Shown here: piece by piece, positions 9,127-41,650 of the stretch
Numbering within the stretch: the first letter of the stretch is position 1
How the letters are laid out: every line of letters begins with the position of its first letter
Assembly: GCF_000143415.4 (NCBI RefSeq)
Contig: NW_003314410.1
Span: 62,001 to 126,000 of the forward strand
Reading direction: 5' to 3'
Length of the DNA: 64,000 nucleotides
Origin: Selaginella moellendorffii
Lineage: Eukaryota > Plantae > Lycopodiophyta
The notes under the pieces: model-generated
Seen by the model: the letters and a program-made list of their open reading frames with translations, nothing else
Databases searched by the model: none
Told to the model about the DNA's origin: nothing
Program-made: the position numbers and the translations under genes

Positions 9127-9238
9127 CGTTGAAGGGCTTTTGTTTAGGGTTTATCCAGCTAACCTTTTTGTCTAAGATAATCATATCGTTTTTTGTTTTC
9201 CAGCTTAGTATCATTTTAATCTAAGCAAGATTATTAAT

Positions 9239-9310
9239 GCGTCAGTAGTCCAACGGCTAGGATAATTGCCTTCCAAGCAATAGACCCGGGTTCGACTCCC
9301 GGCTGACGCA
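9239..9310 (+). tRNA. tRNA-Gly(UCC), copy 1
   Basis: GCGTCAG/CTGACGC acceptor stem, anticodon loop CTTCCAA, GTTCGAC T-loop; 72 nt. Confidence 0.97.
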
Positions 9311-9371
9311 ATTATTGTCTAAAACCTCTAGTTTAGCTTAGTATTATTTTAAGCTAAGTAAGACTGTTAAT

Positions 9372-9443
9372 GCGTCAGTAGTCCAACGGTTACGATAATT
9401 GCCTTCCAAGCAATAGACCCGGGTTCGACTCCCGGCTGACGCA
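9372..9443 (+). tRNA. tRNA-Gly(UCC), copy 2 (D-stem C-C mismatch)
   Basis: Near-identical to copy 1 and followed by a T5 terminator at 9449-9453. Confidence 0.95.
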
Positions 9444-9485
9444 ATTCCTTTTTGCCTCCACGTTTTTAGGGTTTATCTAGAATGC

Positions 9486-15557: not shown

Positions 15558-17277
15558 AATCCCGCTAGCACCAATTCATCGCTCGATTCCCCGACGGCGC
15601 CGCGGCAATCCCCCCAAAATTTCCCCTCGCGAGCGCGATCCAGCTGACGAATCGGTTACCTGGACGCGCCGCCAGATTTCTCGGCGCCAGCGCCTGCTTC
15701 TCGCCGCCGAGCCGCGCATCGCCGAAAGAAACCTAACCGATGCTTGCGTCGGAGGCGCGCATCCAAGCGGCAAGAGCAAGACTGACCGGGAGAGAAAGGG
15801 AAATATTTTTTACCTAGGAAGACTAGGGGCAAGGGAAAGGCGCAGGGCAATGCACGCCATGCTCGTCAAAAAAGGCGGACACTCCACACACACCGCAGCC
15901 GGCCGACGCGGTATGCCGCAAAACGCACACACACAAACGCACGAATGGAACAATGCCAGACGGCGGACGCAAACTGACGGCGTTTTAAACTCGCGGCGGG
16001 GGGCTGCCAACGGCCAGGGCCAGCCGCGCTGCCACGCGGACGGCGCCGATGGGGCTCCACACGGAATATGCGGCCAAACCCACGGTCGTTTTACCGGTTT
16101 GTATGCGCGTAGACGCTGACACGAGTCACAACACGGCGGGAGAGAGGAAGGAATCTCCTGCCAAACCGGCAGCGAATATCCCTCGCTCGCTACCTCTTCC
16201 TCTTACTTTAGCTGGAGAGTCGATCGAGATCCCCGTGTGTAGGAGATTAAAGACGAGCAGCTTAAACGCTTGATATAAAAAGCAAAAAAGTAACATTCTT
16301 TGCCCTTTTTCCTCTCTTTTTTTTCCTCTCTCTCTCTCTCTCTCGCCTTTTTTTTTTCGCTTTCCCTGTCTGTCGTCCTCCAGACTAGTTCCAGTCTCTC
16401 ATCACCCCTTTCCATGGATAAGACCCTTTCTCTGGATCCAATGCGCCGGTCTGATGCAAAAGTTTGGTGGTGAGAGCGACCGAACCAAACGCAACCAAAC
16501 CAAACCCACCGATTAATCGTGTATGGCTTTAGCGTCACCTACAAAACCTGCGACGAACAGGAGAGAAACACAAGCTTTTAAACATTCCCGAATAGAATAA
16601 AACCTTGGAAAAGCAAGAGTACCTTGCAACAGTGGAAGCACCAAGGCATGATAATAGAAGAACTTCTCCAGAAGCCACATCACGTACTTGGAATATCAGA
16701 GCTTGGGCCGAAGGAAGAAGTGCCACTTTGATGTTTCAGAAGCAACGGGGTGGGCGGCAGCGCAGTGGCAGCACTTGTGATGATCACTGTGGGACTAAAG
16801 TCGGGCCCCCGAATTCACGTTCCAATCATGTGCTCGCGATTCCTGAGGTCCTGTGGATAAATTCATAAACAAACAAGGCTCCCGGACAGTGTCATATCAC
16901 CTCCTGTGCGTCTGATTAGAACCGAAAAGAAATGCGAGAAAAGCTTAAAGACCGGCTTCGTTGGCAAAGGTTTACTTCGTCCTGGGAAAATTCTTCTCAA
17001 TCATACAAAAGTCAGTGGCGAGAGAAGCATCGCAAGCAAAACTAAACAGGAAATTCCATACCAGATATCCACGCAGGCTAAAGCGCGAAAACCGGTGGCT
17101 GTCTGTCTTGAGGTATGTTCCACGTAAAAACAATCTGCTCCTTAAAAAAAAGCACGTAAGAACCAACAAAGACGTGACTTGTCCATCCAAAGCGTTTCCG
17201 CGAAAGGCAGTACACGGTGTCGTACTTAAAAACCTGCGCGGAGCGAATCTATACATTATAGACAGTGGAGTCATACC

Positions 17278-18177
17278 TCACACCCGCTCTTTTTCTTTCT
17301 CCTCGACTTGCTTCAGGAGCCTGGATTTCTCTTCGAGTTCCCGCTGAAGCTCCTCTTCCCAAAGTTCTTCACGAGCTTCTATCTCTTCCCTTTCAGTCTG
17401 TGTATCGAAGTTTAAGCGTTCTGTTAGAAACTGATTTTTGTTTTCTACACTTGCCTTGTCATATTGCCAGTGAACGGATCCATCACCTCCGGCACGACGA
17501 TAATCGTCTCCATCATAGTAAGGATCCTAGAATTGCGTTACGTAAGAAGAATAAAAAATGCTTTAGCTCAAGCTTTTACAAACGAAGCACGAACTTACAA
17601 TCATGGAGCCAGCAACGCAGCACCCGAACGAGAACAGGATCGCAATAAACATATCTGGAAAGAAAATCAGCAGTTCCCGATGACAAGCTGTATCTATTAA
17701 TACGCTTACACATGTTTTTTATCTCTTGCTCGCTCATCACCCAGGTGTTGAAAACTTCTTCGACAGGTCTGGTGGTAGCAAGCGTGAATAAGCCTATTAG
17801 ACTGAAAGAATGTAGCCTGAATTCCGTGTGCTTTTTAGACTTCTGGAGAGAAACTTCCGTTAGGAATGAGAAATACAAACAATATAGAAATGAATGCAAA
17901 CCTTTGCTCGTTCGAACTGCTTGCATTTTGCCGAAACATTACATCCAGACTTCTTCAGCGCACCCGGGAGACTAGAATTCAAGCGCTGGAATTTGAAAAA
18001 CACCACAGAGCGGCCATTGAATGAGCCACACAGTGATTTTCATCACGTTGTTCTTTAGAGCATGAAATTTGGTACCTCCATTTAGTTCATTCTTTCGCAT
18101 ACCTGTGATGCCGTATCAATGCAACCCTTGACGACCGGTGTGGAGCATGTATTGCAAGGCGCCATTGCCACAGCCAT
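17278..18177 (-). CDS. PNSB4: photosynthetic NDH subcomplex B subunit 4 (NDF6), multi-exon, not visible as a single ORF
   Basis: Spliced translation ...WVMSEQEIKNMYMFIAILFSFGCCVAGSMIDPYYDGDDYRRAGGDGSVHWQYDKTEREEIEAREELWEEEL... matches the PnsB4 signature (IKNVYMF, DPFYD..EYR..GGDG, ELWREEL); transit-like N-terminus MAVAMAPC. Confidence 0.88.
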
Positions 18178-18326
18178 TACCCAATCACTTGCTTCCGTGG
18201 CCTTCTGCTGTAAAACATGTGGCATCCTTTATTCGTCCACATAAGCTGGTTAATTGTTGATAAGTGGAAACAAAAGCTCACTTGTTTCTTTGGCCACAGC
18301 CTTCTTCTTACAATGCATATTTCATG

Positions 18327-19303
18327 CTAGCCAAGACGTGCCTCTCGTCTCAAAACCTGCCAGAATTTTTACGCCGCAAAGGATTAAAAGCTAGAACCGC
18401 AGGGACGATGCTTTATCTTACCTCCTCGGAAAATTTGATTAGAATTGTTGTCCTTGGCCGACTCTGGCCTTCCATTGGTACGTAATGAGCCGTTACTCTC
18501 GCAGGAAATCCAGCACCTTCCAACACACCCTGCGAGGAGAGAAAACCTCAGAATTTTTACTTGAAATGAGACATCTATGCCCAACCTTTACAATACCCGC
18601 GACATATGCTCCGCAGTTAAACGCTCCCATGTCCTTGGGCACTGAGATGTATCTAAAAACCATGGCAAAATTAATGCGTTTTTTCGCAGCACAAACTTCC
18701 AGAGAAACTTACTTGTTCACGAGAAGTTCTTTCTCGCTGATCATGTACTCGTCGTCGTGCTCCGTGCCTTTTTCCAACGAGTCGGCAACCTATTCGGAGA
18801 GATCACTTCTACTTGCCTGAAAGAAAAACCACGAGACTTACCTTTCCAAAGAGAGACTTCCAGACGGTGGTGTGGACAAAAGATAAGATTCCTAGCAATC
18901 GTATCTCTCGTTTGTTACCCTATGCGAGAGTTAAAACAAAAAATTAACACGTCTACTAGAGATTCTTACCTTCTCTCTGTGACACAAAAGCTCGAGGAAA
19001 CGGAGACCAACGCCATATCCCTGATCCTCCAATCTTTGAGAGACTTCCATCACATACATTCTCACAGTGAAGCATCGAGATTTTTTACCTGCGCTCGAGC
19101 TCTGCGATGTTATCTACTCGCGTCTGGTTGTACTGCACGATCTCGGAGAACAAAAACGAGAGAGCATTCACACTGACCTGGAAATGCGATCTTGTGCTTG
19201 CATTCTATGAGATCAAGATCATCGTGCTTACCTCGGATTTGCCCTTCCCAAGACGCCGGTCCACGACATTGACGATCTGCTTCACAGCTCTGGCGCCTAT
19301 CAT
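18327..19303 (-). CDS. TRAPPC5: TRAPP complex subunit 5 (Trs31), multi-exon
   Basis: MIGARAVKQ...KGKSEVSVNALSFLFSEIVQYNQTRVDNIAELERRLEDQGYGVG...DSLEKGTEHDDEYMISEKELLVN...TTILIKFSEEVLRREARLG*. Confidence 0.95.
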
Positions 19304-19555
19304 CGCAAGAACCCTAGAAGTAGCTGGCAGGAATCGAGCTCACGACCTCCCTAGAAAGCGAACACGTGGCGAGCTGTCGAGTTGTCCAGATGTGAAAGGT
19401 TAGGGCTAGAGAGGCGCTCGGGAATTGCAAGGTATTCGCTCCTGTCCTGCCTCGACATGAAAACTAGAAACTCCCCACTCCAGTCACTCAAAATTCTCCA
19501 TTCGTCTTCGTCAATTTGTGGATGAAGGAGTTGGGATCCAAAAGAGAAAACCGCA

Positions 19556-19708
19556 ATGTTTTGGGAAATCTTCGCGGGCGTGAAGCCGACGGTGGCGCTG
19601 CGAGCTGCCGGAGCGATCCTGCTCGTGGCAGCTGCCAAGGTCTCCAACGCGATCAAGGAGAATGGAAGCAAACGCTACGAATTGATCAGCACAAGTGATT
19701 CCATGTAG
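19556..19708 (+). CDS. candidate 50-aa single-pass microprotein
   Basis: MFWEIFAGVKPTVALRAAGAILLVAAAKVSNAIKENGSKRYELISTSDSM*; GC3-rich codons in an otherwise unexplained GC island. Confidence 0.4.
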   Translation: MFWEIFAGVKPTVALRAAGAILLVAAAKVSNAIKENGSKRYELISTSDSM

Positions 19709-19751
19709 CGATCAGGACAAACCAATGTAAAAAGTACATTGCAATTAACTT

Positions 19752-19823
19752 TGCCCCCGCAGAGGGTTGAACTCTGGACCTCCAGTTTACAAGACTGGCG
19801 CTCTACCACTGAGCTACAAGGGC
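19752..19823 (-). tRNA. tRNA-Thr(UGU)
   Basis: GCCCTTGTAGCTCAGTGGTAGAGCGCCAGTCTTGTAAACTGG...GTTCAAC...CGGGGGCA cloverleaf. Confidence 0.96.
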
Positions 19824-20671
19824 ATTTCGCATAAAACCCTTTCGACAAAAACGTCTTTCTCAGTCCTGCCCTGCGCGATTAATTAACGCAAGCATTGTGA
19901 AGGGAATATATTACAACGAGACAATGTATAGATACGGCTGTCAGTGGAGATTTCGCTATAATCCATGGCCATGCATCACACCCATAGCATTCTATGTATG
20001 TAACGCATAGCCTAGAGCTATATATCATAGTCGCAATCATGAATCATGCAACATGTCACAATGCATGATGGGGGCAAAATGCGAACTATGTCATGCCATG
20101 CATCACACACCATTGCACTACATTCAAAGCGTGTGTGATGGATGGGACCTCTCGCTCTCTCTCGCACACAAGATCCCTGGAAGAAATCTTAGGTTTGAGC
20201 AACGGATCTTCTTCCAGGTGTGTAGAAACCCTTGCCTTGGAAGTGTTGTTTGCGAAGTTCTTGCGAGTTCTTTCGTGGGTGTGAGAAGTTCGTGACAGAA
20301 ATGCCATAGCCTTGGAGGTTTTTGCGGTCGATCAAGTCCTCCGCCTTTGTCTCTGTGTCGATTATCGGAGCTGGGCTCCCTTTTTTTTTCTTTCTTGATG
20401 AATGGTTTTTTCCTGGAAAACAGTGCAGACTGCTGCATCGACTGAATAGTTCTCGCCCACCGATCGAGACAAACAAAGTTTTTATGTCGGAGAAACTTTC
20501 ACAGTCGCTCAGGAGCTTTTCTTTATTTTCGCTGTTCATCCTCTTTCTGTGATGACTACTGCTTTCCTTTTGCTAATGGCAGTCCTGTGCTTTTGTCTGC
20601 AGCTTCAATCATTTTGAGAACATCTCCATTGCCTCTGGATGTTTTCTAAGAAGTAGCAACCACAGTTTGTG

Positions 20672-41565: not shown

Positions 41566-41650
41566 GGGGTGGTGGCGCAGTTGGTCAGCGCGTAGGTCTC
41601 ATAGCTTCTGAGTTATCCTGAGGTCGAGAGTTCGAGCCTCTCTCACCCCA
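41566..41650 (+). tRNA. elongator tRNA-Met(CAU) with 11-nt intron (41604-41614)
   Basis: GGGGTGG/TCACCCC stem, CTCATA|gcttctgagtt|ATCCTG, GTTCGAG; canonical plant intron-containing Met-e; T5 terminator downstream. Confidence 0.97.

Follow-up and report, generated by a model that had tools for sequence, protein, structure and literature searches.

Adjacent TRAPPC5 and PnsB4 genes of Selaginella moellendorffii: probable separate expression, with a minor read-through RNA spliced across a 149-nucleotide spacer

The nuclear polycistronic loci of green algae are reportedly exclusively polycistronic, and land plants are said to produce a bicistronic CDC26-TTM3 transcript. In animals, conjoined (tandem chimeric) genes as a rule produce fusion proteins, their coding exons being spliced to one another. 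A further class, the read-through transcripts of Arabidopsis, has been catalogued at 271 loci (Kurihara et al. 2022, Commun Biol, PMC9768141): 158 of these splice out an intergenic intron, the poly(A) site of the first gene lies inside that intron at 106 of the 158, and splice-site mutants yield more mRNA of the first gene. At most of the loci the second gene has monocistronic mRNAs and start sites, while the second open reading frame (ORF) on the read-through RNA is rarely translated and the RNAs build up in upf mutants. Here we describe two neighbouring genes of the lycophyte Selaginella moellendorffii, encoding the vesicle-tethering subunit TRAPPC5 and the chloroplast NDH subunit PnsB4, in a stretch of 64,000 nucleotides (nt) that we call the window (NCBI RefSeq assembly GCF_000143415.4, contig NW_003314410.1, positions 62,001 to 126,000, forward strand). 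Their arrangement looks like the overlapping or read-through transcription known from Arabidopsis rather than like an operon-like message.

Both genes lie head to tail on the minus strand, and the region from 19303 down to 17278 consists of two complete, intron-rich genes (Table 1). The co-orientation and the stop-to-start distance given in a preliminary description of this DNA proved exact: 149 nt separate the TRAPPC5 stop codon, TAG at 18329-18327, from the PnsB4 ATG at 18177-18175. NCBI annotates TRAPPC5 and PnsB4 as two distinct gene models, and the gap between its coding sequences (CDSs) is 101 nt, the start codon being ATG 18225 instead of 18177.

Transcription of this region was followed in Logan assembled contigs of four runs (X1, X2, X4 and X7) from four studies, which give no starts, ends, strand or single molecules; they belong to a set of 24 runs, all of them Logan contigs and none recorded as RNA. 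The runs represent RNA, because coding introns are removed in the contigs: all 12 coding introns of both genes are gone in the four runs, seven of seven in TRAPPC5, where they measure 50-65 nt, and five of five in PnsB4. Variants of both haplotypes are present. RNA covers the spacer without a gap in four of four runs, and one contig crosses both genes in run X7 (2066 nt, 16800-19175) and another in run X4 (1814 nt, 17062-19682). A k-mer (De Bruijn) assembler joins any transcripts that have 31 nt in common. Contigs spanning both ORFs therefore fall short of proof of one mRNA.

An RNA joint 18225->18281, found in run X4 only, skips 55 nt bounded by CT..AC (cut +1) and defines an intron whose donor lies 46 nt after the TRAPPC5 stop codon and whose acceptor AG, at 18228-18227, lies 1 nt before ATG 18225 and 49 nt before ATG 18177. 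The contig carrying the spliced spacer continues unbranched through the spliced TRAPPC5 exon 7/8 junction. The same intron is retained in the main contigs of runs X1, X2 and X7, in which 18103-18354 forms one unbroken piece. Every base of the spacer is thus transcribed, and an intron can join the 3' region of TRAPPC5 to the 5' region of PnsB4; since the RNA is gap-free and the intron joins the regions of both genes, the spacer is not a silent intergenic region. A spacer intron had previously been proposed at 18281-18208, and of this proposal the GTGAG donor at 18281 stands, being used in RNA. The acceptor TTTTACAG at 18208, and with it the length of 74 nt, does not: no such joint occurs in the RNA contigs of the four runs, and the RNA shows 55 nt.

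The hexamer AATAAA at 18233-18228 is followed by a U-rich stretch with a CA at about 18210. Judged from its sequence context, it is likely the poly(A) signal of TRAPPC5, with cleavage near 18210. Because the hexamer sits inside the 55-nt intron, splicing of that intron removes the signal.

From these observations we consider it probable, with moderate confidence, that TRAPPC5 and PnsB4 are expressed separately, that the terminator of the one and the start region of the other both occupy the spacer, where the two mRNAs overlap or abut, and that a minor read-through isoform arises by way of the intergenic intron. TRAPPC5 mRNA would mostly be cleaved and polyadenylated just after the AATAAA, and PnsB4 protein would come mostly from an mRNA of its own, with a 5' end within the spacer or the final portion of TRAPPC5. 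Because the TRAPPC5 terminator and the PnsB4 start share about 100-150 nt, some polymerases would run on past the terminator; the 55-nt intron, with the poly(A) signal inside it, would then be spliced out to give a TRAPPC5-PnsB4 read-through RNA, for which the spliced contig speaks. By analogy with the Arabidopsis read-through class, PnsB4 would be poorly translated from this RNA, and nonsense-mediated decay would act on it.

That class is the closest known case. Shared with it are the co-orientation of two protein genes, here both covered by assembled RNA, a donor in the first gene's 3' region and an acceptor in the second gene's 5' region (18281..18227, run X4), a first-gene poly(A) signal that falls inside the intron if the AATAAA has the role ascribed to it, and signs of coexisting monocistronic mRNAs. 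The Selaginella locus differs in belonging to a lycophyte, in its very short gap (149 or 101 nt) and in the dominance of the unspliced spacer form in three of the four assemblies. Intergenic splicing across a terminator, so far described in Arabidopsis, thus probably occurs in a lycophyte as well. With animal conjoined genes the locus would share read-through of the first gene's terminator and a late first-gene donor spliced into the second gene; unlike them, it has its donor beyond the stop codon and leaves both ORFs whole.

The two genes could also be separate overlapping units without any read-through, the PnsB4 promoter lying within TRAPPC5, in its last exon or intron, the intron of 55 nt being an optional one of the PnsB4 5' untranslated region (UTR) and the two-gene contigs being assembly joins across at least 31 shared nt. 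De Bruijn contigs do merge overlapping transcripts, the annotation has two genes, and for the donor at 18281 to be used, transcription would merely have to begin a few tens of bases upstream of it, within exon 8 or intron 7 of TRAPPC5. Three points count against it, and we rate it unlikely: RNA polymerase II does not usually terminate as close as about 100 nt to a poly(A) signal, so that some run-on into PnsB4 is to be expected; TRAPPC5 yielded neither a start site nor a promoter motif; and the spliced-spacer contig of run X4 passes the exon 7/8 junction without a branch.

Contig depths favour separate expression, with or without read-through. In run X1 mean depth is 88 for the contig that combines TRAPPC5 and the spacer with PnsB4 exon 1, and 20.6 for the one with PnsB4 exons 2-6, the two branches out of PnsB4 exon 1 summing to ~43; in run X2 it is 163 for the contig that combines PnsB4 and the spacer with TRAPPC5 exons 7-8, and 82 for TRAPPC5 exons 2-5. 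By these contig means the depth ratio of the two genes flips ~7-fold between the two runs, which weakly suggests that the genes vary independently and speaks against one shared mRNA, because a single mRNA does not predict a swinging ratio.

Several points weigh against separate expression with minor read-through. The depths are means over contigs, which measure expression poorly, and ranking gene parts by them is advised against. No PnsB4 promoter element came to light, and in none of the four runs does a contig end or break inside the spacer. The single two-gene contigs of runs X4 and X7 make a substantial share of true two-gene molecules possible, and the RNA of all runs consists of assembled contigs. 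The earlier alternative, that either one mRNA carries both ORFs or the PnsB4 promoter lies inside TRAPPC5, keeps its force as a pair, since gap-free spacer RNA and the joining intron require that one option or a mix of the two must hold.

The first of these options, in its strong form, is a functional bicistron: one capped, polyadenylated RNA from the TRAPPC5 promoter would be the main or obligatory source of both proteins, with PnsB4 made by reinitiation or another non-canonical route. It draws on the spliced forms of both genes on single contigs in runs X4 and X7, on the spacer coverage in all runs and on the gap, which is far below those between neighbouring CDSs: ~1.4 kb to the divergent kinesin gene, with a tRNA-Thr gene inside, and ~1.7 kb from PnsB4 to the JmjC gene, ~845 nt of it PnsB4 3' UTR. 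Even by this local standard the 101/149-nt gap is unusually tight. An upstream ORF that begins at ATG 18242 in the unspliced spacer, and at ATG 18318 in the form without the 55-nt intron, has TAATG at its end and so overlaps the PnsB4 ATG; the overlap could aid reinitiation and may be chance.

The architecture of the RNA argues the other way. Ribosomes reinitiate inefficiently once they have translated an ORF of 194 codons. Between the probable TRAPPC5 5' end (19358) and ATG 18177 lie 10-13 AUGs, the number varying with the form of the spacer; the spacer itself contributes five if it is retained whole and four after loss of the 55-nt intron, where two short upstream AUGs had been reported before. 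Leaky scanning depends on few or no AUGs before the second ORF, and in green-algal bicistrons, which use it, a single added AUG cut output of the second ORF to background (PMC11291117). In stability, the predicted RNA fold of the spacer does not surpass those of shuffled sequences (z = +1.03), and in an Rfam scan no family matched the spacer, a tRNA being the only match; without a stable fold or an Rfam match, nothing suggests an internal entry element. The products of the two genes act in unrelated compartments, the ~7-fold variation of the depth ratio is as described above, and on the comparable Arabidopsis RNAs, which are decay targets, second ORFs are rarely translated (PMC9768141).

Like the green-algal loci, the Selaginella genes are co-oriented, lie about 100 nt apart and belong to the Viridiplantae; the algal loci need a weak start on the first ORF and no intervening AUGs, whereas here the first ORF is long and 10-13 AUGs intervene. 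The algal loci are reportedly polycistronic throughout, whereas TRAPPC5 and PnsB4 appear to vary independently; the depth flip, and NCBI isoform X3, which is without ATG 18225, would speak against an exclusively polycistronic locus. With CDC26-TTM3 the pair shares a land-plant nuclear location, two unrelated proteins and co-oriented adjacent ORFs. CDC26 is a very short upstream ORF in a pairing conserved across plants; TRAPPC5, by contrast, is a full-size ORF, and the pairing is absent elsewhere among the taxa tested.

Adjacency of the same ORFs across distant lineages, as in CDC26-TTM3, was not seen in the taxa reached. Approached from the PnsB4 side, the TRAPPC5-PnsB4 pairing is not present in date palm or in three PnsB4 transcripts of other species. 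In date palm (CM018771.1, 6897-8231 and 10001-12158) PnsB4 stands head to head with a PsbQ-family gene ~1.8 kb away. The three RNA contigs of other species, about 44-53% identical, have ordinary 5' UTRs and no TRAPPC5; they are probably from ferns, because the Ceratopteris protein has the same truncated form. Among the 120 matches listed of 346 in a PnsB4 profile search there was no lycophyte besides S. moellendorffii. Some Selaginella species have lost the plastid ndh genes, and PnsB4 may be missing there. The date-palm PsbQ-family neighbour may itself be a relative of an NDH lumen subunit.

Taken with the contig-only nature of the RNA, the apparently independent depths, the 10-13 AUGs and the two annotated genes, the absence of the pairing from the taxa reached leaves without support the candidate bicistronic unit making both proteins that the preliminary description had put forward; we regard the functional bicistron as improbable. 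Slightly more doubtful is a wider version, in which PnsB4 comes mainly from a two-gene mRNA, the optional poly(A)-removing intron decides whether the message encodes TRAPPC5 only or both proteins, reinitiation proceeds via the TAATG upstream ORFs, and the locus is one case of a broader shared-message habit in a compact lycophyte genome. Among the papers searched, none connects Selaginella to nuclear bicistronic or polycistronic mRNAs. Were a 194-codon ORF and a chloroplast NDH subunit indeed produced from one land-plant mRNA, eukaryotic polycistrons would extend beyond cases with a small first ORF and leaky scanning, and translation of both from one mRNA would suggest that lycophytes kept the algal habit. 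For annotators, the locus is a warning that assembled RNA chains neighbouring genes together in the compact S. moellendorffii genome.

Proximity alone could suggest a fusion protein, or stop-codon read-through from TRAPPC5 into PnsB4. The frames of the two genes differ in the unspliced form, in the 55-nt-spliced form and in the 74-nt model, and stops intervene, which refutes a fusion at the sequence level. TRAPPC5, moreover, ends near its normal C-terminus, because its matches reach almost to the ends of their targets: the Pfam TRAPP match stops at profile position 153 of 154 and the yeast Trs31 match at residue 271 of 283. Earlier statements that TRAPPC5 stops at its conserved C-terminus and that a fusion is unlikely are both borne out, and we give this possibility next to no weight.

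Table 1. Features of the TRAPPC5-PnsB4 region, in positions of the window
Feature	Position	Strand	Remarks
TRAPPC5 CDS	18327..19303	minus	Trs31-type TRAPP core subunit; 194 amino acids (aa), 8 exons
TRAPPC5 exons	19303-19232, 19177-19089, 19033-18970, 18919-18842, 18789-18713, 18652-18586, 18529-18422, 18356-18327		
Probable TRAPPC5 5' UTR	19304..19358	minus	main contig of run X1 stops at 19358 directly against Illumina adapter
Spacer, TRAPPC5 stop to PnsB4 ATG	18178..18326	minus	149 nt, transcribed throughout
Intergenic (spacer) intron	18227..18281	minus	GT..AG, 55 nt; alternatively spliced
Predicted 74-nt intron	18208..18281	minus	donor common with the 55-nt intron; acceptor TTTTACAG
AATAAA hexamer	18228..18233	minus	only canonical poly(A) signal in the spacer (hexamer scan); at the 3' end of the 55-nt intron
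Upstream ATG in PnsB4 frame	18223..18225	minus	+16 residues; start codon of NCBI isoforms X1 and X2
PnsB4 (NDF6) CDS	17278..18177	minus	179 aa from ATG 18177 as spliced in RNA, 6 exons, stop 17280-17278
PnsB4 exons	18177-18103, 17985-17902, 17842-17710, 17654-17599, 17526-17455, 17397-17278		
PnsB4 3' UTR	16433..17277	minus	~845 nt, unusually long; contigs end near 16351-16436
tRNA-Thr(UGU) gene	19751..19824	minus	same orientation, upstream of TRAPPC5 by ~390 nt from its probable 5' end; context only; Rfam match

The identity of both genes agrees with what had been claimed for them. That of TRAPPC5 rests on single-exon searches together with the NCBI product: exons 4 and 7 match Pfam TRAPP (PF04051), the best solved-structure (PDB) match of exon 7 is to yeast Trs31 chains (residues 239-271 of 283), and NCBI lists a 194-aa product with PF04051 at this position. 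The protein accordingly has a TRAPP (Bet3-like) domain and is nearest in similarity to the Trs31/TRAPPC5 subunit. At its 5' side, a loose contig end AGATCGGAAGAGC lies at 19358 in run X1, and two contigs of that run abut at 19358/19359, both ending in Illumina adapter. This sharp RNA end suggests a TRAPPC5 start site or a processing site, and from the contig end 19304..19358 is probably the TRAPPC5 5' UTR. Between TRAPPC5 and the tRNA-Thr gene, 19359-19700 shows low-depth transcription in runs X1, X2 and X7, and in run X4 the upstream stretch, to 19682, shares one contig with TRAPPC5; a tRNA-linked or upstream-initiated transcript ahead of TRAPPC5 is possible.

For PnsB4, exon 5 matches the solved chains 7eu3_9 (E 7.6e-6), 9grx_4 and 7wff_d, which are the PnsB4 chains of solved NDH-PSI complexes from barley, Arabidopsis and one further source. 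An alignment of the family (A1) displays the invariant motif DP(F/Y)YD..YR..GGDG..HW.Y(D/E), and the Selaginella protein has the single transmembrane helix, the motif after it and an acidic coiled C-terminus, along with its similarity to the solved chains. A search with the A1 profile, which includes the S. moellendorffii protein itself, retrieved 346 family members, mostly named angiosperm PnsB4, with E values down to 1e-84. NCBI holds the full-length product as an S. moellendorffii protein and names isoform X4 PnsB4-like; its PnsB4 gene has eight protein accessions and four isoforms that differ at the 5' end.

These 5' differences bear on the start codon. ATG 18225 survives in both RNA forms observed, with the spacer retained and with the 55-nt intron removed, and a look-up of the 195-aa form that the contigs encode found no matching protein record. 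NCBI isoform X3 starts at 18177, which would fit either a form with the 74-nt intron spliced out, so that this form may exist, or a start site downstream of 18225. Because PnsB4 homologues of other taxa begin MAH.., resembling MAVAM at 18177, we regard the conserved start as being 18177, with 18225 an in-frame AUG upstream of it, so that the likely PnsB4 start is corrected to ATG 18177 from the ATG 18225 of two NCBI isoforms. In the 5' leader of PnsB4, run X7 carries a two-base difference at 18194-18195 (plus strand TC>GG) present in neither assembled haplotype.

Three further features concern PnsB4 splicing. Intron 5 (17454..17398, minus strand) is of the GC-AG type and is removed in four of four RNA runs. 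Intron 3 (17703-17710, minus strand) has a second donor, 6 nt downstream, whose use accounts for NCBI isoforms that read ..NMCKHMF.. in place of ..NMYMF..; the variant residues lie just before the transmembrane helix, and the RNA contigs show only the shorter form (..NMYMF..). The 3' UTR contains two alternatively spliced introns, 17061-16993 (69 nt) and 16899-16850 (50 nt), both far beyond the stop codon; RNAs spliced there should in turn be candidate substrates of nonsense-mediated decay. A third cistron in this 3' UTR was considered and rejected, the ORFs there being without a Pfam match.

The window is identical (100%) to S. moellendorffii scaffold GL377714.1, and the second haplotype, on scaffold GL377569.1, is 97.8% identical to it with the same gene arrangement. 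The two haplotypes show no difference over the 149 nt of the spacer, one difference in 360 nt of PnsB4 introns and 6.9% in TRAPPC5 introns. Constraint on the spacer was rejected as an explanation of its identity: the PnsB4 introns are equally invariant, which marks a low-divergence block.

Elsewhere in the window, two tRNA-Gly(UCC) genes form a tandem pair on the plus strand (9238-9311 and 9371-9444, 60 nt apart), and an 85-nt tRNA-like gene at 41566-41650 (plus strand), with a four-base anticodon call 'cata', may be an intron-containing tRNA.

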